Shown here in pieces: positions 47,500 to 58,800 of a stretch of 64,000 bases of DNA (positions are counted from its first letter, which is position 1; the number at the start of each line of letters is the position of its first letter). Made by a program: the position numbers and the translations under genes. The DNA is from Salpingoeca rosetta. Taxonomy: Eukaryota; Protista; Choanoflagellata. Under the pieces are notes generated by a model. It ran no database searches and was not told the origin of the DNA. It saw only the letters and a program-made list of their open reading frames with translations. The stretch covers positions 814,410 through 878,409 of the forward strand of contig JAWQFM010000023.1 in assembly GCA_033442325.1 (NCBI GenBank). The letters run 5' to 3'.

Positions 47500-48535
47500 A
47501 TGTTTGTCTTGTTTGTGGACGTATTCGCGTGGTTGGATGCCTCATCGCGATACTCATCTATTGTCCGCACCTGCATGAACATAATTGGGGTGTCTGACTC
47601 GGGGAACGTACGGCTAAATAGCGCGTAAGTCAAAGGATGAACGTGAAAGTGTTGGCGACATTTCTCATGGTGTTCTCATCTTCTGTGCTACTGCGAATCT
47701 GCCATGCATGCTCATTGTTTCGAGCGAGAGGGCTCAAAATCGGCCGCCAGTCCAATTTGATTTCTGTACAACAATCTCTTCTTTTCACCCAAACTGCTGG
47801 CCACATGCGCCGGTGTTCCTTCCCCAACTTCCCTGCGTTCCTTGCTGTCAGCAATCACTACATTGACGCCTTGGCCTTCGCCCTTCAGAGCAACAGCTGC
47901 TTGGAGAAACTCGAGTGTGTTCTTGCCGCTGTTGGTGCTTTCCCAATCCATTGCGCATTTCCTCACTTGTGCTGTTCGTCAAGTCAAACCTCACATCAAA
48001 TACGTTTGCCATTTGCAGCTTTACCGACGTGGACGTCACCCAGACCCATGCTGTCACCATCGCCAACGCCCTCGACCCTCACCGCAACATCGTCGTTGAC
48101 TTGTCGGTTCATTGTTTGAAATTGACGCCACGCACATGGTGAAGATCTTGCATGTTCTCGAATGAGCTTTCACATGCGTTCATGACATCTATTACACCTG
48201 CCACGAACCGTATCAAAACGCGCAGTGGCACCAACCGTCCTGATCTGCAACAGGCCTTTCATCTGCGAATGAGCGAACGTCGCAATCGTGGCCTACTTGG
48301 CATGTTCCGATGGCTTTGGCGGCGAGTGCAGCAGCTGTTCTGGGCATCTGTTGGCAATTACCTACTACCGGCCACGCTTGCGGTTCGTTGCAGTTATGAT
48401 CGTTTCCATGCCAAATTCCGTGGCGCTTGTTATGGCTTTGCTTCACCAATGTTAACATGCTGTCATTCACTATCAATGTGCATACACATGCTCACACTCT
48501 GGATCTCACGCGCACACACGCACACTCTCTATGTA

Positions 48536-48610
<75 letters not shown>

Positions 48611-49064
48611 TGTGTTCAGCCGAACAACGTCACCTTCAATCGGACGCTTGGTGTTCTGGGTGCGTGTTGCTGGAGTGATGATGACATGACTGCGCGTTCA
48701 AATTCAGCCTGGAATAATATGACAGGGGAGAATTCCTCACCATGCTCCCGCTTGCATTCTTGCATTGGAATTACAGAAGCCCAACTTAACCCTGCCCAAA
48801 CACAGAACGGCCTGTTGCAGCAGGCAAACGAACAATCTAGCGAGCAAGCTTCGGGACCCACAACCCTCAGTCCCCACTTTCGTGAGTACAACGACGGTTC
48901 CTCTCCTGCATTCCCCACCTGTACTGCGCTCGATCCATGCGAGTCTCTTCTCGTCCAACGTGTGCCAATCATTGGACGGTTTTTGTCAGAATCGCTCATG
49001 GAGGAGTTGACCAAGGAGAACGCCTTCTTGAAGGAGCTCAAGGATGACTGGGAAGACAAGCTCG
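47500..49064 (+). CDS. Probable 5' exons of the kinase-PARP gene, including RNI-type LRR-like fragments
   Basis: Segments YIDALAFALQSNSCLEKLE and VTQTHAVTIANALDPHRNIVVDL resemble RNI-like LRRs. The exon ending DDWEDKL-G|GT at ~49064 joins in phase 1 to the acceptor at 49284. The more upstream joins are uncertain. Confidence 0.35.
48536..48610. repeat. (CAT)~25 microsatellite, probably intronic
   Basis: Direct reading. It is followed by a candidate acceptor (TGTGTTCAG). Confidence 0.85.
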
Positions 49065-49178
49065 GTTGGGTCACTCATGTCTTAGACTTGTCTCAGCTGA
49101 TTACGTTTGTCCCTCTCTTGCGCTTTCATTCGCCCTCTCACTTGCCCACCCTCACACACACGCACGCACACACGCACG

Positions 49179-49247
<69 letters not shown>

Positions 49248-49284
49248 TGCATATTCACCACATCCCCTTGATTCATTGTATAAG

Positions 49285-50407
49285 AGAGCGTGTTGAACCT
49301 GAACATCCCATCGTCCCGTTTTGTGGGAAAAGTACGAGTTTTCGACACCAGTGGCAAGCCCGTTGGTGGTTCGTTTGGTTCCCTGTTCAAGGCGGAGCTG
49401 GCGGGCCAGCCGGTTGCTCTCAAGCAAATGCCCGTCCAGAATCGCCCTCGTCTCTCCGAGATCATTGCATGCGTTGCTGGGTCTGAGGACGTTCCAGACC
49501 ACTTGAAGCAGCTGCGACGCGAGGCGCTCATCCTGCTCTCCCTTCGTCATCCCAACATTGTGCACTTCCTTGGCCTCACCCACGATGAGCAGAGCCAGAC
49601 GCTGGCCTTTGTGCTGAGCTGGGCCGAGAATGGCTCTCTCTATGATGTCTTGCACGTGAAGAAGCAGCCGCTTGACGAGCCAACTTGTCTTCGTGTTGTA
49701 TTTGAGGTGGCCTGTGCCATGGCGTTCCTGCACGCCCACAACGTCGTGCACCGTGACCTCAAGTCGCCCAACGTGCTGCTGGACGCATCGCTCTCCGCCA
49801 AGGTGACGGACTTTGGCCTGAGCGCCTTCAAGTCGGCAGACAAGTCCGTGGTGTCGAAGGTCGACGGAACATCTCTGTGGGCATCCCCAGAGCAGCTATT
49901 CAAAATGCAAGAGCTCCGTATGGACACGGACGTGTTCTCCTTCGCCGTTCTCCTGTGGGAGCTGTTCCTCAACATCAAGCCATGGCATCACGGCAAATAC
50001 GCTGCACTGGGTGGCGCGTCATCCATTGTCATTTCTAAGGCGTATGAGGAGGGCCGGTATCTCCCGCTTGACGTTGAGATCAACGGTCGCAGGCTGAGCA
50101 ATGCGGTGCAGCAAGTGCTTGGTCAGTGCTTTGATGTGAGCGGCAACCGGCCTTCGTTTGTTCAGCTGCAAGGCACGCTGGGTGGGCAGTACACAGCGGC
50201 CAAAGAACAGCACGAAGTCGACATGGCGAAGCAACACAGGCTGCTGCACGGTCCTGCTGATGCCGTGTGGAAGTGGCAGCAAAGTGTTCTTGTACCACTG
50301 CAGTCCTTCACGGTGACTCATCCAACACGCGCGTCTGTGCACATTGCTGCTGTTGGCGCCGCACACGACACGGCCACCGCCATCGTCAAACAGGTGAGAT
50401 CGTGTGT

Positions 50408-50475
<68 letters not shown>

Positions 50476-51392
50476 CTGTGCGTGCGTGCGTGCGTATTCG
50501 TGTGAAGCGATGGGTTGCTGTGGCTTGCTTATCAGGTCTCTTCGCCACTGCTCTCACGGCCCATTGGCATCTTCCTTCCCTGTCCACAAACACACCACAG
50601 ATGATCACGGAAGCTGGTGGGCGCTCAAGCGATGAGGCGACAGCAGCGCCCTTTGGCAAGACCGTTGCTGGTGTTGCTGTTGTGCAGTGCAGCCAGAAGA
50701 ACGTTGCCTTCAACGGCTCCTTGCACCGCAACCAGACCCGTTATCTTGGTCACATGAGCTGCGCCAACCACCCGTTCCACCCCAAGTACCAGATCGATCC
50801 GGCAACAGGTGCTCCCACCAACGCCGAGGAAGCAGCCGTCCTTGCTCGCGTCACTCTCCACCCTGCTGGCGCTTCACCGTACAAGGTGCTGGATCAGACC
50901 ATGATGCAGCCCGATGTGCGTCTTCGCCTGCAGCGCGTGTTCCACGGCGTGCCGTCCTTTGCCGTGGCCATGAGCATCCTGGGCGGCGATTTCGCACAGC
51001 TGCAGAAGACTGACAACGGCTGGTACGGTGCTGGCTTCTACTTCACGCCAGACCTCGACTATGCTCTCGAGTACAGCGACGCGTGCCGTGACGTGCCGGC
51101 TGAACTGAAGAAGATGAAATTGCCTGCAGGCAAGCAGTTCCGGGTCGTGCTTGTGTGTGACGTGCAGTATGGCAACCCATACCCGGTCCGCGACGCTGCC
51201 ACCTTCAACGGCAAGCCACTCGTTGGCGGGCACGACGCCCATGTCGCCGTGGTTGATTTCAGCTCCGGCAGCGTCGTGGATGCCATGCCCATCAAGTCGT
51301 CCCAGTGGGCCAGCAAGCGCACCGCCGCCGAGGTTGTGATCAACGACCCATCATGCGTCCTCGTGCGCGGCATCCTCGTGTTTGAGGCCTGA
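49285..51392 (+). CDS. TKL (MLK/RIPK-like) Ser/Thr kinase fused to a C-terminal PARP-type ADP-ribosyltransferase domain
   Basis: Kinase motifs: GGSFG, VALK, REA, HPNIV, HRDLKSPN, DFG, GTSLWASPE, DVFSF. Intron 50394-50600. ART motifs: RVFHG, GWYGAGFYFT..YALEYS, VLVCDVQYGNPY, GHDAHV, AAEVVI..SCVLVRGILVF-stop. Confidence 0.85.
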
Positions 51393-52871
51393 ACGCAGCC
51401 GTAGGGGAGTATCACCCACACCCCAGCAGCACCTTCGTTGGTGTGTTTCATCCTGCAACTTCCTCCTTCCCTTTCGCTCACCTGTTATCCCATGTTGCGT
51501 TCCTGTCTTCGTTCCCTTGCGTGTCATCACAGTCACTGACCTTCGCCAACCCCAGCGTGCATTTGTGTTACATTACGTGCGTCCCACGCTCTTTTCCATT
51601 CACCACTTTCATCCAATCATTGGTTTGCGTTTGCGCGTTGACACTCACGTCCTTGAACGCGTTGTTTACCTGCCCTGCATTTGCCTTCTCCTCTTCCGTT
51701 CTTCCGTTCTGGCTTTCTTTCGTTCTCCTACACTGCCCTGCCATTTGCTTGCTGTTCCAAGGGGCAAATGTGGTTGCCCCTGAGAGCCTGTTTGCCCGAG
51801 CATTTCCGTTTCCGGCGATCATGAACTCGTTCTTGCCTTCCTACAACTGCACCCCCGTTCACCTCCACCTCTGCCAGCGCTGTTACGTTCCTTTCACCCT
51901 CCACACGCTTTTGTTCGTGTCCACCTGGTCTGCTTGTTTTGCGTTCCCCACCACGGACCAGCGCAGTCGTACACCTTTCCCCACGCGCAAATAATCAACC
52001 TCAAATGAAAGGAGTGGTGTGGCAGACATGATGTGAATGCGACACATAAACTGCTGAGTGCAACAACAGCAGCAGCAGCAACAACACAACAACAACAACT
52101 TAAACCATAACACTACTACTACTTAATAAACACCACACACACAACCCCCCCCCCCTTCCCACTTCCATGAATCATCATTGCATTGCCTTTAATGAGTTGA
52201 GCTTTGAGTTGATCTGGAACTCACGCCGCTGCGTGTGTCCTGGGGAGGAAAGGTGTACCCCGAGGCGCTAACCACCGCACGCGGAAGAAAACCAAAGGCA
52301 TGAAATGAACTGGAAGAAGAGCAAAGAGGGGGAGAACAACTGAGACGGGAAGAGACTCGAAAGCGCAAGTGGGCATTCAAGAACAATCAAAACCGGGTCA
52401 ACAGAAACGATGAGTAAGTAAGCTGTACGAGTACCAGGCCCGTGCCCGTGCATGAACGCTGGTCATGTATGTAATGAAGGGGGGCTTGTAGAGAAAGTGG
52501 CGTATGGAAAAGGTAAACGTATCCAATCCATGGAGCAACGGAAAAAAGCAAAAAAAGAGTGAAGGCTAGGAACAAAAGGAAGGAGGAAAAGAGGGGAAGG
52601 AAGAGGGAAGGAAGAGAAAAGAGGAAGAGGAAGAGATGGGAAGGAAGAAGAAGAGCAAGAACATGTTCGGAGCCAGAGACAACCCCGCTAAGAGAAGAAC
52701 AACACCACAACACCACAACACCACAACACCACAACTGTGCCGACATCGCACGCCACCCATGCAACCATCATCACACACAAGTCCAGTAGGTATAACACGT
52801 AACAAACAAACCAAACGAAAACATTCACAAAAACGACACATCACGACGCACGCGCGGCCGTGTGGTCAAGT

Positions 52872-55800
52872 TCAGGCGCTGGCATCGTGCTTCTCGGGTG
52901 GGAGGAGGTGGAATGGCTTGGGAAGGGTGCGCACATTGACGGGAGGGGCGTCCTCGTCGTCGTCAACGGTGGAGGCATCAGCGGCGCCGCCAACGAGGTG
53001 CGTCGGCTTGGGTGGCAGATCTTGGTAGCCGGGGTTGGCGACGACGCCACGCGGCGCAGTGAGCGGGTCGTAGCCGCCGCTGCTGCTGGCCGGGCCTTCA
53101 CGCGTGTAGTTGGGGTTGGAGAAGCCCTCCATGCCCGGCACCTCTGGCACGGGCTCGTTGTTCTGCTGCAGACGGAGCGGGCACGACATGCTCTCCTCGT
53201 TGGTGGCAAGGTGGTTGATCACCTCGCTCACCGTGTTGCAGCGCACGGACAGCGGAATGTCGTTGAGCACAAACTCCGAGCCGTTGTGGCGCAGCGAGTG
53301 GTGCTCCACGCGGCCGTCGTCAATCACCAGGCTGATGGCGTACGTGCCAGGGCGCGCCTTGCTCTCGCGCACGAGGAAGTTGCCCTTGGTGCGGTCCTGG
53401 GCCAGGATGGCCTCGGCCTCGCCGCGGGCAAGCGGGCCGTGCATGTACGTGGGGCGGTCCTTCTTCACCACGCTGCCATAAAAGTCCTGCTGCTCCTGGG
53501 ACAGGGCGCCGTAGAAGTCGCCCTCGGGCTCCGCGGCCTGCGGCGCGTGGCGCACCTGGCCATACTCTTCCTGGAGGTTGAGCAGGGCGCTCGTGCCGTC
53601 CATGGTGCGGCTCAGGTGGTCAATGAGCACGTCAAGCGTCATGCAGTCCGTCTTGGGGCGGTTGCCGTTGATCAGGAAGCGGCCCTGCGCGTCCTTGTAC
53701 AGCTTGTGGTGCTCAAACTGGTTGCCTTCAATCAGCAGCGTAAGCACAAAGTTGCCGTTGGCCGCGCTCTCGCGCACAACAAAGTCACCGACGTTGCCAG
53801 AGTTCTTCAGAACAAAGTCCTCGGCCTCGGCGCGCGTCATCTGGCCCACGTACCAGTCGGGCCGCTGGTTGCCGCCCGGCTGCGAGAACATGGGGTTGTC
53901 AAACAGCAGCACGCTCTGGTCGCGCAGGGACAGCTGGCGCAGGAGCGTGTTGGCCTGCGAAATCTCGTCCGACGCCTTGTTCATCGTCGCCCACTGCTGG
54001 ATGGCCTCGTTCTGGCGGCGGTCCTTGGTCGCCTTGCGGTTGCGCCACACAACAAGCACAATGGCCACAACGAGCACGAGCAGCGCCACAAGCGCAATCA
54101 CAGCCAGGATGCCTGGCGACAGGCTGGCCGCGCTGCCCGTCGAGGCGAGCGGCGTGGTCGTGGCGTTGGTGCTCGTGGTCGTCGTCGTGGTCGTCGTCGT
54201 TGTGCCGCACACGCGGTCCGTGGTGGCGGTAAACTCAGACACAACGTACTCGCCGAGGCGGCAGATGCGGGCCGTCTGGCACTCGCGGTCCGTGGTGGAC
54301 GTGGGCGGCGACACCTCAAACTGGTTGGAGCGGCACTCCTCCACAAGGCTGCACAGCACGGGCGCAAAAGGGTTGGGATCCGAGTCGTCCAGGAACTCGT
54401 CGGCCTCGCACGGCGATGCGGTGAAGCCCATGACGGTTATGTCGCCAGAGACGGACCGGTTGAAGAGGCGAGCCGTAAAGTCCTCGTTGAGGGAGGCGAC
54501 GGTGGCAATGATGGAGCCCTGGCGCAGGTCGATGCGCAGAATCTGCGACGCATCCTGCGTCGTGTTGATGGACTGCACCAGCGCGGCCTCAAACGCCTCG
54601 CGGCGCGACTGCGTGCCGGCAAGGGCGTTGAACTTGGCGTCAAAGATAAGCGAGACAGAGTACGCGGGCGCGCACACGCGGTCCGAGGTGGTGGTGGGCG
54701 GGAGCACCTCAAACTGCTCCATGGGGCAGGTGCTGATGGTGGCGCAGAGGCGGTCCGTCGTGGCCGTGGGCGCCGACACCTCGTACTCCGTGTCCTGGCA
54801 CGAGCGCACGCGCTGGCACTCGCGGTCGTTGACCAGCGACGGCGCAACGAGCTCGTACTCGTTGGACAGGCACTGCGTCCACGGCGAGCAGATGCGGTTC
54901 TGCGTGGGTGTGAGCGGGCGCGAGATGAACGTGTTGTTGGGGCACGTGCGGCCCATCTGGCACTCGCGGTCCGTGCTGATGGTAGGCGCGGCCGTCTCAA
55001 ACGAGCCAGGCTCGCAGGGCGACACGCGCGTGCAGAAGTCCGTGCTGCTGTCGCGGTAGAACAGGCCCTCGATGCAGCGGCGGCACTGGCGGTCGGTGAA
55101 GATGGTGGGGCGCACCACCTCCTCGTAGCCGAGGTCGCACTCCGTCACAGGCGTGCAATCGCGCTGGCCAGAGAGGGCGGCAAAGTCAAGGCCGGCCTGG
55201 CACGGCGTGCACGGCGTGCTGGCGTTGCGGTCCAGGTCGGCGGTGCCGGCCGGGCACAGGAACTGCTCGCAGGAGCCGATGGAGCCCGCGGGCACATAGT
55301 GGCCGTAAGGGCACGGCTGGCAGGCAGTGAGCGGGTTGCGGTCGTGGTCGGTGGTGCCGATGGGGCACGGTTCGCACTTGGCGTCAGAGGTAGAGGTGGG
55401 GGCGCGGATGCGCTGCTCGCCAGGGTCGCACTTGGTGATGAGGTGGCATAGGCGGTTCGACGACGCCGTGGGCGCGGTGCGCTCGTACTCCATCGACGGG
55501 TTGCACTGGGTCAGGTCGCGGCAGATGCGGTCCGTGGTTGGCGTGGCGGGGAACAGCTCAAACTGATCCTGGTCGCATACGTCGAGCGTCGTGCACTCCG
55601 TGTCGCTGGTGGAGGTGCATGGCGCGCTGCGGTACTGCTCATCAGAGCACGTGCTGCACTGCTGGCAAGACACATCGTTCTCCGAGTCGCAGGCGCGCAG
55701 GATGTATGTGTTCGGCGGGCACGCGGAGCAGCCGGCGCACTGCACGTCCTCCAGCGCGGAGCAAGCACGAATCTCGTAGCGGCCGCTGGGGCACTCGGAG

Positions 55801-58800
55801 CACTCCGTGCACTCACGGTCAGAGTCGAGCGTGGGCGCCTGGCTCTGGAAGGTGCCAAACTCGCACTTGCCCACGGCCGTGCACTGCACATCCGTGGTGA
55901 GCGTGGCGTGCGTGGAAATGTACTCTGAGGCCGCGCAACGCGACACGGGCACGCACGTGTCTGAGCCGGCGGGGCGGTAGGTAATGTCCTGGACGCACTT
56001 GCGGCAGAGGCGGTCGTGCTGGCGCGTGGGCTCGCGAATCTCTTCCTCATCCGGGCCGCACTGCGTCACGGGGCGGCACGACTCGGCCTGGCCGTCGACG
56101 GGCTTGAAGGTGGCGCCAAGCTCGCACTGGCTGCACACGCGGTCGCTCGTTGGGGTGGGCTTGGCCGTCTCCTCCTCGCCGGCGTCGCACGTGGTGACGG
56201 GGAGGCAGGGCACGCCCTGGCCAGAGACAGCCTTGTACGTGCCCTCAGGGCACTCGTCGCAGACACGGTCGCTGATGAGCGTCATGGCCTGCACCTCCTC
56301 AAACCCGGGCGCGCACTCTGTGACGTCCTTGCACGTGGTCTGGCCCTCCTCATCCTGGTATGTGATGCCAAAGACGCACGGATGGCACGGCGTGGCGGCG
56401 TCGCTGTCGTGGTCGTGGGTGCCTGCGCGGCAGGTGAAGCTGGAGCAGGAGCCGTGGGAGCCTGCCTCCGTGTAGTGGCCAGCGGGGCACATCTGGCAAC
56501 CCGTGGAGCCGTCGCTGTCCGAGTCGATGGTGCCGGCTGGGCAGTCACGGCACACGCGGTCCGACGAACGGGTTGGCGCAGAGACCTCCTCCTGGCCGCG
56601 CTCGCACTCCTCAATGGGCTCGCACTTGCTGCCGCCAACGGATGGGGAGAACTCCGTCACGCCGTCGCAAGGCAGACAGTCTGCCGAATCGGCGTCGTAG
56701 ACAAGGATGAAGCCAGCGCTGCACTCGCACGTGTCTGTGCAACCCGGGCAGGAACGGCGTGCCTCGTAGGCGTCCATCTGGCGAATGGTGTCGCGGATGC
56801 CATCCTCGCCCTGGCCGGAGCAGCACACGTCAAGCACGACGTCGAGCTGCTCGTCCGTGGGCTCGGCGCACACCATCTCCTCAAATAGCTGCGTGATGAG
56901 CTTGTTGCAGGTGAGCGTGTCACAGGAGCACAGGCGGTCCGTGGTGAGCGTGGGCGGGATGGTCTCGATGAAGGGATCCTCGCACACGCTGGTGGGGAAG
57001 CATGAGGCGCGGTCCGGCAGCGGCTGGTACTCCATGCCGAGGGTGCAGCTCACGCACGCGCGGTCGCGCACGGCGTTGCCAGAAACAGACTCCTTCTGGC
57101 CAGGCTTGCACTCAGTCCAGGGAGAGCAAACGGCGTCGGAGGACGCGGAGCATGGGGTGGAGGCCCAGGTGCCCATGCCACACGAGGTGCATGGCACGCA
57201 GCGGTGGTCCTTGGCGTAGTAGCCGGGAGGGCAATCGGCAATGCACGACTGGCCTTGCTCGTCGACCCAGAGGTTGAGGTTGCCGTCGCACAGGAGGCAG
57301 TTGGTGGCGTCCGGGCCATCACAGTCGGCACACGTGGAGTGGCATTCAGCACACCCGTTGCCGAGCTCATACTCGCCATCGGGGCACTCGCTGATGCAGC
57401 GGCCGTTGCGCAGCTGCAGGTTGGGTCCGCAGGCCGTGCACTCATCGATTGCCGGTCCAGTGCAGCCCTGTTCGAATTGACATGAGGGAATAGAGTGGGT
57501 GGGGGAACGGGTATTGTGGAGGTGAGGCAATGGTAGCACATTTTTGTGAGGTGTTGGGGCAACAAGCACATAGTTATTACACTGAATATCCTACTTGAGA
57601 ACACACACACGTACACGCTCACACACACACACATTCACACACAACACAACGTCTTACGTTGCAGGTGGGGTGGCAGGCGGCGCAGCGGGTGTTTTCGGTG
57701 CCTTCGTTGCCGCCGCAGGTGCCGGCAAGGTACTCGTTAGTGTTACAGGTCGAGGCGTCGGTGCAGTCGGCACAGACACGATCGCGGTTCGCGGCGGGCG
57801 GGGTCAGCTCGTACTGGGTGTTCTCCTCGCAGCGGGTGACGTTGAGGCAGTTGTCCTGGTTAGCCTTTGGCTGGTACGTGACGACGCCAGAGCAGTCGTC
57901 GCACACGCGGTCGGCAAACGTGCTGCCCTCAACGAGAATGTACTCGCCAGGCGAGCAGTCCGTCCACTCCTTGCACGTCGGGTATGCGTGGGACGCGCTG
58001 TCCTGGAAGTAGCCGTCGCGGCACGCCTCGCACACGCGGTCCGTGGAGGTGGTTGGGGCCTGCTTCTCGCGCTCGCCAAGGCCGCACATGGACACGGGCA
58101 TGCAGCCCTCAGCGTTGTCGGTGGTCGAGAACGTCTCGCCGAGCTTGCACGATTTGCACACGGCGTCGGACGTGCGTGTGGCGGGCGTGGCAAGGTACTC
58201 GCCGGGCTCGCACGTGGTCACGCGCGTGCACGAGTCGACAGAGTGCGAGTTGGAGTCCTGGAAGGTGTCGTCGTCACACGGCACGCAGCGGCGGTTGCTG
58301 GAAGTGGTGGGCTCCTCCACCTCCTTCTCGCCGGCGCCGCACAGCGTGTGTGGACGGCACGTCTTCTCGTTCTCTGACTCCGTGTACGTGTTGGGCCCAC
58401 AGGCCTGGCACACGCGGTCCGAGCTGGCTGTTGGGGCGGCCACCTCGCGCGTGCCGGGGCGGCAGTTGGTGACGGGCTTGCAAATCTCCAGGCCCGTGTC
58501 ATCGGCGTAGTTGGTACCGACCTGGCAAGCGCGGCACTTGCGGTCGGAGGTGGGGGTGGGGCCAACGAGCTCAGCCGTGCCGACGGGGCAGTCTGAGACG
58601 GGCCTGCACGTGCGCTGGTTCTCCTTATCCTGGAACGTCTCCGGGGCGTCGCAGCTGACACACGACTGGTCGCGGCGAGCGTTGCCTGTGGTGGAGATGT
58701 GCGTGCCGACGGGACAGGTGGTCCAGGGAATGCACTCGGTCATGTCGTGTCGTTGTCGTCCTGGTACGTGCCGTCGGGGCAAGGGGAGCACTCGCGGTCG

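Follow-up and report, generated by a model that had tools for sequence, protein, structure and literature searches.

Does the Salpingoeca rosetta gene publicly named only "TKL protein kinase" also encode an ADP-ribosyltransferase (ART), and would a single polypeptide then carry both enzymes? The question was raised by a reading of a 64,000-nucleotide stretch of this choanoflagellate genome (GenBank assembly GCA_033442325.1, contig JAWQFM010000023.1, positions 814,410 to 878,409 of the forward strand; hereafter the window), which proposed from the letters alone that the gene at window positions 49285-51392 joins a complete TKL kinase to a PARP-type ART. The source assembly is that of S. rosetta and the window belongs to its contig 23, where we found a three-exon gene on the plus strand whose spliced translation is 100% identical to the public 655-residue protein P0001. 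From the evidence given below, we consider it probable that this real S. rosetta gene produces one polypeptide in which a TKL serine/threonine kinase of the RAF/CTR1 kind, predicted to be active, is joined to a divergent ART of the PARP superfamily, with the two predicted activities coupled in cis, and that it is a short-N-terminus member of an expanded family. The earlier, sequence-only reading had all of its motif coordinates exact and missed the short first exon, which is part of P0001. The gene is organized as follows, in window coordinates.

48998-49064, plus strand: exon 1, with the start codon and a 22-residue helical N-terminus (a coiled-coil stub) corresponding to P0001 residues 1-22; a GT donor stands at 49065.
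49065-49284, plus strand: intron 1, assigned from sequence (GT..AG), with a long (CA)n microsatellite; absent from P0001.
49285-50393, plus strand: exon 2, preceded by an AG acceptor and encoding the TKL kinase domain in full (about 49368-50177), then a linker and the initial ART elements (from about 50328).
49422-49817, plus strand: kinase catalytic residues, with the Lys69 codon at 49422, alphaC Glu102 at 49521, HRDLKSPN at 49749-49772 and DFG at 49809-49817.
50394-50600, plus strand: intron 2, 207 nucleotides, GT..AG, in frame and stop-free, with a (GT)n repeat; it breaks the first ART helix and is absent from P0001.
50601-51392, plus strand: exon 3, encoding the remainder of the PARP-like ART, with the stop codon at 51390-51392.
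50943-51332, plus strand: ART active-site residues, with His507-Gly508 at 50943-50948 (FHG), Tyr539 at 51039 (GFYFT), Tyr550 at 51072, the HDAHV strand from about 51231 and Glu636 at 51330 (AAEVVI).
51393-51700 (at least), plus strand: 3' untranslated region, in which a stranded RNA depth of 75-500 continues, many of the reads coming from a sister paralogue.

As intron 2 is open and in frame, the region reads as a single 700-codon open reading frame.

The kinase domain passed two Pfam models (PF07714, 134.6 bits, E 4.8e-39; PF00069, 133.5 bits, E 1.1e-38). Lys69 (in VAxK), Glu102, HRDLKSxN, Asn185, DFG and SPE are all present in P0001, each of the motifs on which the claim of a complete kinase had been based lying at its given position. 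Across 19 aligned relatives these motifs are kept, except in two gene models that are gapped at DFG and in one divergent member, and we read the kinase as probably active from this pattern. The closest solved kinases in the PDB are plant CTR1, RAF1, BRAF and TNNI3K (E 1e-31 to 1e-26 for CTR1/RAF), which places the domain in the TKL group by its nearest PDB matches. The likeness to the TKL kinases RAF, CTR1, MLK and TNNI3K and to the LRRK/ROCO kinases lies in the kinase domain itself and in the HRDLKSxN and SPE motifs, and partner modules of the LRRK2/TNNI3K kind (leucine-rich repeats (LRRs), ankyrin repeats, Roc-COR) occur in paralogues of P0001. Unlike P0001, none of these known kinases is joined to an ART.

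For the C-terminal module, sequence alone left the fold unsettled. PF00644, the Pfam PARP model, scored 20.3 bits (E 4.4e-4) on the P0001 module, below the gathering cut-off of 26.7 bits, and 19 of the 22 family members matched it only below threshold (best E 3.8e-5). Searching the PDB with the ART part by phmmer returned no match, and a family profile returned only marginal ones (ZAP, PARP16, PARP12 and PARP4, E 0.03-0.7), the top match being the PARP-like domain of ZAP at E 0.033. The fold was settled by structure and profile-profile comparison. We used an AlphaFold model built on an alignment of 22 relatives (alignment A1), which had a mean predicted local distance difference test (pLDDT) score of 90.6 and a predicted template modelling (pTM) score of 0.91. 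The Foldseek matches shown for this model were all catalytic fragments of PARP1, PARP2 and PARP3 (probability 1.00, from E 1e-8). By VIA-align, 172-187 residues aligned to the approximately 190-residue catalytic domains of PARP15, PARP12, PARP14, PARP10 and the tankyrases with Z-scores of 14.6-15.6, the best row being PARP15 (Z 15.6, root-mean-square deviation 3.4 over 184 of 198 residues). Thus the PF00644 and PDB comparisons that had been proposed as a check failed at the level of Pfam and phmmer and gave a PARP fold by Foldseek, VIA-align and hhalign.

The hhalign comparison was made against family B, a second PARP family in S. rosetta, and gave a probability of 98.1% (E 1e-13) over 209 columns, with the His, Tyr and Glu positions in register. 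The paired motifs, ART first, are FHG with WHG, G-A-G-F-Y-F-T-P with G-A-G-I-Y-L-T-P, H-D-A-H with C-D-S/T-H, and A-E-V-V-I with E-E-Y-V-V; in common are WHG/FHG, G-A-G-x-Y-x-T-P, D-x-H and a Glu followed by hydrophobic residues. Family B (L013-L020) passes PF00644, unlike the P0001 ART, and no kinase was seen in the stretches of it that were read. It occupies at least nine loci with single open frames of about 370-400 codons, WHG, G-A-G-I-Y-L-T-P and E-E-Y-V-V motifs and 60-71% mutual identity (for example G000:C13:1698408-1699484 and C32:33575-34654).

In PARP enzymes, the His and Tyr of the H-Y-E triad position NAD+, and the Glu, which stabilises the oxocarbenium transition state, is required for chain elongation; the catalytic Glu lies at the penultimate strand, which the last strand follows. 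The model of the P0001 module matches this layout, with the Glu opening the penultimate strand (model residues 296-302) and the last strand following at 308-317. His507 and Tyr539 align to the FHG and GEGTY of PARP16. The claimed His, Tyr and Glu codons stood exactly where the sequence-only reading had put them. In alignment A1 (model numbering), Gly171, Tyr202 and Glu299 are invariant and His170 is nearly so, with Arg in one member, and the active-site residues are likewise invariant or nearly so in alignments A1 and A3 together. H-Y-E was present in 29 of 32 close family domains and was the commonest state (55) among more distant relatives with all three columns aligned, and the triad is lost in some paralogues (C-Y-Q in P0031, R-Y-E in P0022). 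For membership of the PARP/ARTD superfamily, the ART fold and a triad of the form H-Y-[E/I/L/Y] were both found and the score stayed under the Pfam sequence cut-off. From the predicted structure, we conclude that the C-terminal module is a divergent PARP-superfamily ART domain with a complete predicted NAD+ site (H-G, G-x-G-x-Y-F-T, a second Tyr and the catalytic Glu). Compared with five paralogues, the ratios of nonsynonymous to synonymous substitution rates (dN/dS) were 0.17-0.27 in exon 2 and 0.16-0.30 in exon 3, which indicates that both halves of the gene are under purifying selection.

The sequence-only reading had described the ART as following the kinase after one intron. That intron exists, but it does not separate the two domains; it cuts the ART module itself. 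The PARP-fold alignments from VIA-align begin at model residues 7-36, which are P0001 residues 344-373, and exon 2 gives way to exon 3 (residue 392/393) within the first long ART helix (model helix 47-60). The first ART strand and half of this helix are encoded by the kinase exon, and a product of exon 3 only would be an incomplete domain. As intron 2 lies inside the ART fold, two separate transcripts for kinase and ART are unlikely. The full-length predicted model has a helix at residues 2-25 and a pTM of 0.79, a value that would fit a defined placement of the two domains relative to each other. Complete transcriptome open reading frames of a second choanoflagellate, Microstomoeca roanoka, carry ankyrin repeats, the kinase and the ART in one frame.

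RNA data were available from two raw 2026 runs and from assembled contigs. Stranded reads of the raw runs covered exons 2 and 3 in an orientation that fits plus-strand RNA, and their depth at 50500-50580, the non-repeat part of intron 2, was 0 in both runs, compared with 1-14 on the flanks. No splice joint between 50393 and 50601 reached the listing threshold in these reads, the (GT)n repeat being skipped and the depth nearby being low. Contigs of the window type without mismatches were found in runs X1 and X4, and one X4 contig (depth about 130, with the paralogue type at about 227 at position 50675) joins 50393 to 50601, running from nine letters of the end of exon 2 through four letters common to the exon end and the intron end into exon 3. 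The check across this junction that had been proposed from sequence therefore returned zero intron depth and one spliced-type contig, with a bridge of only 13 letters and no listed joint; a spliced form of the P0001 copy is suggested, not proven, by these data.

Is this gene an isolated fusion? The ART matched 23 loci with open frames in the S. rosetta genome (at least 23 copies), and at least 18 of these, P0001 included, are preceded on their own strand by a TKL kinase at a distance of 0.4-0.6 kb. When compared with 1.84 billion cluster representatives, the family profile matched 23 at E<=1e-30, 89 at E<=1e-10 and 568 at E<=1e-3. The named members of the close set are from S. rosetta and M. 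roanoka, and the others come from environmental or run assemblies. In the tree, P0001 is sister to P0002 (Shimodaira-Hasegawa-like approximate likelihood ratio support 98) within a clade of five S. rosetta members (support 99). Across the family and more distant protists, Pfam assigned the following architectures.

P0001 clade: coiled coil-kinase-ART.
P0006, P0009, P0024 and P0031: LRR-kinase-ART, the LRRs of the family being of the RNI type.
P0010 and P0022: ankyrin-kinase-ART.
P0013: ankyrin-ART.
P0025 (S. rosetta PTSG_11903): LRR-Roc-COR-(weak TIR)-ART, with the ART behind Roc-COR, no Pfam kinase domain and a TIR match of 25.8 bits against a 28-bit cut-off.
Didymoeca costata: TPR-ART and COR-ART.
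Apiculatamorpha: WD40-kinase-ART.
Paulinella chromatophora transcriptome, P0040: SidE phosphodiesterase-kinase-PARP in a single chain, the SidE domain being of the Legionella type.
Cryptomonas paramecium P0163 and environmental P0092 and P0118: protein kinase plus PARP, with the ART above the Pfam cut-off.

The proteins P0163, P0040, P0092 and P0118 have the same kinase-then-ART order as P0001 and fall in the same broad ART clade of the tree. They differ in that their ARTs pass PF00644 and in the domains that accompany them (SidE phosphodiesterase, WD40, thioredoxin). Any relationship to the family is distant, with matches to its profile at E 1e-10 to 1e-21, and these proteins are likewise uncharacterised. 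The kinase-ART order is widespread among protists, and is either old or has arisen more than once. Two signature peptides were also looked for in prokaryotes, a narrow test: among 185,579 genomes of bacteria and archaea, 49 pattern matches came up and none was confirmed. Two relatives that have no kinase are called "PARP catalytic domain-containing protein" in UniRef, which shows that the domain is recognized by some automatic pipelines. The S. rosetta genome also holds PARG and many macrodomain loci, which means that ADP-ribose marks could be both read and erased.

Several family loci showed further features of their own. In the sister paralogue P0002, the assembly has a deletion of one nucleotide inside the DFG codons (L021:1880-2000 on G000:C23; GAC-TTGGC compared with GACTTTGGC), and the public model skips the motif. 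RNA reads of the P0002 type mapped on the window had no listed one-nucleotide gap at DFG, and the deletion could be an assembly error rather than the mark of a dead kinase. The paralogues L022 and L023 (G000:C21:969300-973700 and 1041000-1045500) are near-identical and lie 75 kb apart in opposite orientation. In each, the 3' end of the kinase exon is partly repeated ahead of the ART exon, and in one of the two this repeated piece has a stop. P0004 (L024, G000:C23:1066300-1070600) differs from P0001 by a synonymous divergence (dS) of 0.33 in the ART exon and 0.77 in the kinase exon, a contrast that suggests gene conversion or exon exchange among paralogues. Directly downstream of the P0001 gene, and convergent with it, a long open reading frame on the minus strand (window 52872-57569) encodes an ectodomain of cysteine-rich repeats together with a transmembrane stretch and cytoplasmic repeats that are SH2-like.

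Several observations weigh against our reading of P0001 as a transcribed kinase-ART enzyme. Besides the sub-threshold PF00644 score, the placement of Glu636 is based on profile alignment, motif and strand order, and the activation segment of the kinase has low confidence in the full-length model. An H-Y-E triad does not tell poly-ARTs from mono-ARTs. P0001 has just a 22-residue helix before its kinase and is without the LRR and long coiled-coil region of its paralogues. At diagnostic positions, the reads of the two raw RNA runs carried mostly the letters of the sister paralogue (78 of 78 at 49544, 208 of 210 at 50984), which lies at contig 23:783400-787800 and matches at 91.6% identity along the full stretch, with the intron and 3' untranslated region counted in; the P0001 copy is thus a minor, weakly expressed transcript in those two samples. 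Lastly, on one side the splice junction of the P0001 copy has a bridge of only 13 letters, in a single contig.

If the ART is active, which reaction would it catalyse? Known PARP/ARTD enzymes of the PF00644 family (PARP15, PARP12, PARP14, PARP10, tankyrases 1 and 2) have in common with P0001 the ART fold at the Z-scores given above, the H-G, the G-x-G-x-Y-F-[TA] motif, a D-[SA] strand, a Glu followed by a hydrophobic strand, and the last strand. P0001 is only 11-18% identical to them, has about 85-110 extra residues before the His strand and, unlike PARP10, PARP12, PARP14 and PARP15, has Glu as its third triad residue. Its partner is a kinase, and it is without macro, WWE, zinc-finger, ankyrin or SAM domains. 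The nearest local pattern around the Tyr is that of PARP16, a mono-ART of clade 6, in which FHG...G-x-G-x-Y-[FL]-T-x-D-L-x-x-A-L-x-Y-S aligns to residues 149-194; this match is weak (E 0.28 over 48 residues). PARP16 is a tail-anchored endoplasmic reticulum protein and, unlike P0001, is not fused to a kinase. Its third triad residue is hydrophobic or aromatic, not Glu (PMC9189837), and PARP16-like proteins without the helical domain have been listed for S. rosetta (Perina et al. 2014). Clade 6 is defined by a third triad residue other than Glu, by a helical domain at the N-terminus and by the absence of a kinase; these features were not found in P0001, and we ruled out a PARP16 orthologue by the Glu and the weak score. 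A tankyrase-like protein was also ruled out, as the P0001 gene has neither ankyrin nor SAM.

A true poly(ADP-ribose) (PAR) polymerase like PARP1/2 or tankyrase, making PAR chains under the control of the kinase, seems to us unlikely. Such an enzyme would be consistent with the intact and conserved H-Y-E triad, with structural matches that include tankyrases 1 and 2 at Z about 15, and with the presence in the genome of PARG, which removes PAR. However, PARP3 and PARP4 carry H-Y-E and only mono-ADP-ribosylate (PMC9189837), as had been anticipated by the caution that the Glu alone does not prove PAR synthesis. Furthermore, the Z-scores are tied between the mono-ARTs PARP10, PARP12, PARP14 and PARP15 and the tankyrases, the nearest sequence motifs are those of mono-ART or inactive members (PARP16, PARP12, ZAP), and Pfam found in the P0001 gene none of the partner domains of poly-ARTs (WGR with the helical regulatory domain, or ankyrin repeat clusters with SAM). 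Given the lack of PAR-type accessory domains, the tied structural scores and the mono-ART-type motifs, mono-ADP-ribosylation or the synthesis of short chains seems to us more likely than that of long polymers.

Could the P0001 copy instead be decaying or redundant, a duplicate with a truncated N-terminus and hardly any transcription, its paralogues being the working genes? We searched upstream of exon 1 with the N-termini of P0002 and P0003 by tblastn (E 1e-6 to 1e-4) and found only out-of-frame relics.

47841-47915 and 47957-48097, plus strand: relics of an LRR-like N-terminus, or unannotated exons, in two different frames.

Between these relics and exon 1 come stops, a frame change and microsatellites, among them (CA)n tracts and, near 48530-48610, a (CAT)n run, and we read P0001 from its sequence as a probable N-terminally shortened family member. 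The relics, the microsatellite expansions before exon 1 and the overwhelmingly sister-type raw RNA reads all fit decay. The 655-codon frame is nevertheless intact, dN/dS relative to the sister is 0.23 in the kinase exon and 0.16 in the ART exon, mismatch-free contigs of the window type, one of them spliced, occur in X1 and X4 at the depth given above, and another short-N-terminus paralogue, P0004 (666 residues), is also intact. On this evidence we regard decay of the P0001 copy as rather improbable. An ART that is catalytically silent, serving as an NAD+/ADP-ribose-binding or regulatory appendage of the kinase (compare ZAP/PARP13 and PARP9 in animals), or that acts mainly as an NAD+-depleting hydrolase, is improbable, for although the best sequence-level match is to the inactive ZAP domain, the triad is lost in P0031 and P0022 and one relative has the weak TIR match, ZAP is without the triad, and the His, Gly, both Tyr and Glu of the family are kept in 29 of 32 close domains at dN/dS of 0.16-0.30, as expected of an active site.

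Returning to the reading of P0001 as an active kinase-ART, we propose a mechanism in which an N-terminal module would control assembly or activation, the kinase would autophosphorylate or phosphorylate partners, and the ART would use NAD+ to ADP-ribosylate itself or its targets. The two modifications may be coupled in cis, so that one activity gates the other, and together form what a signalling or defence-type pathway puts out. Within the family, this cassette, as kinase-ART or as ART, stands behind different modules of sensor or scaffold type (RNI-type LRR, coiled coil, ankyrin, Roc-COR, TPR). The role in stress, cell death or defence against pathogens that had been suggested for the gene may be considered in this light, as the sensor-type modules of the paralogues and the lineage-specific expansion fit such a role without proving it. 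More specifically, and only tentatively, the cassette could be the output module of pre-metazoan receptors resembling those of innate immunity, with LRR, ankyrin, Roc-COR and TPR as sensors whose activation would set off ADP-ribosylation gated by the kinase, or the consumption of NAD+, to fight a pathogen or bring about cell death.

To judge from the literature found, what is new here is the kinase-ART fusion, PARP-type ARTs and TKL kinases being known kinds. No human PARP has a kinase-ART architecture, as the sequence-only reading had stated. Its further suggestion of an undescribed system is upheld in part: the gene is not a one-off, given at least 18 kinase-ART genes in the genome and others in other protists, so that the architecture is indeed widespread, and in the literature found no paper characterises it. 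We found no description of a kinase-PARP architecture in the PARP surveys (Otto 2005, Citarelli 2010, Perina 2014, Sowa 2022 and a 2026 fungal PARP preprint), the S. rosetta genome paper or the conflict-system papers of Aravind, most subscription journals lying outside the search; the surveys and the genome paper do list choanoflagellate PARPs, with no kinase fusion among them. Because the match to PF00644 falls below threshold, the public name of P0001 ignores its ART, and because the Pfam model misses the domain in this way, public annotation names such proteins as kinases only and censuses of choanoflagellate PARPs probably undercount.

Most work treats protein phosphorylation and ADP-ribosylation as two signalling systems of their own, which make contact in trans. 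An animal example is PARP12, which is reported to mono-ADP-ribosylate two TKL kinases, RIPK1 and RIPK3 (PMC12184365). In the closest unicellular relatives of animals, a single chain carries both enzymes; there are at least 18 copies, combined with repeats and GTPase modules of the kind typical of immune receptors. Such a fusion offers a direct and testable handle on how phosphorylation and ADP-ribosylation are coupled, and it bears on whether defence or stress signalling based on ADP-ribosylation predates animals. If the innate-immunity-like interpretation is true, the family would represent an ancestor or analogue, fused in cis, of the crosstalk that links PARPs to TKL kinases in animals, such as that of PARP12 with RIPK1 and RIPK3.

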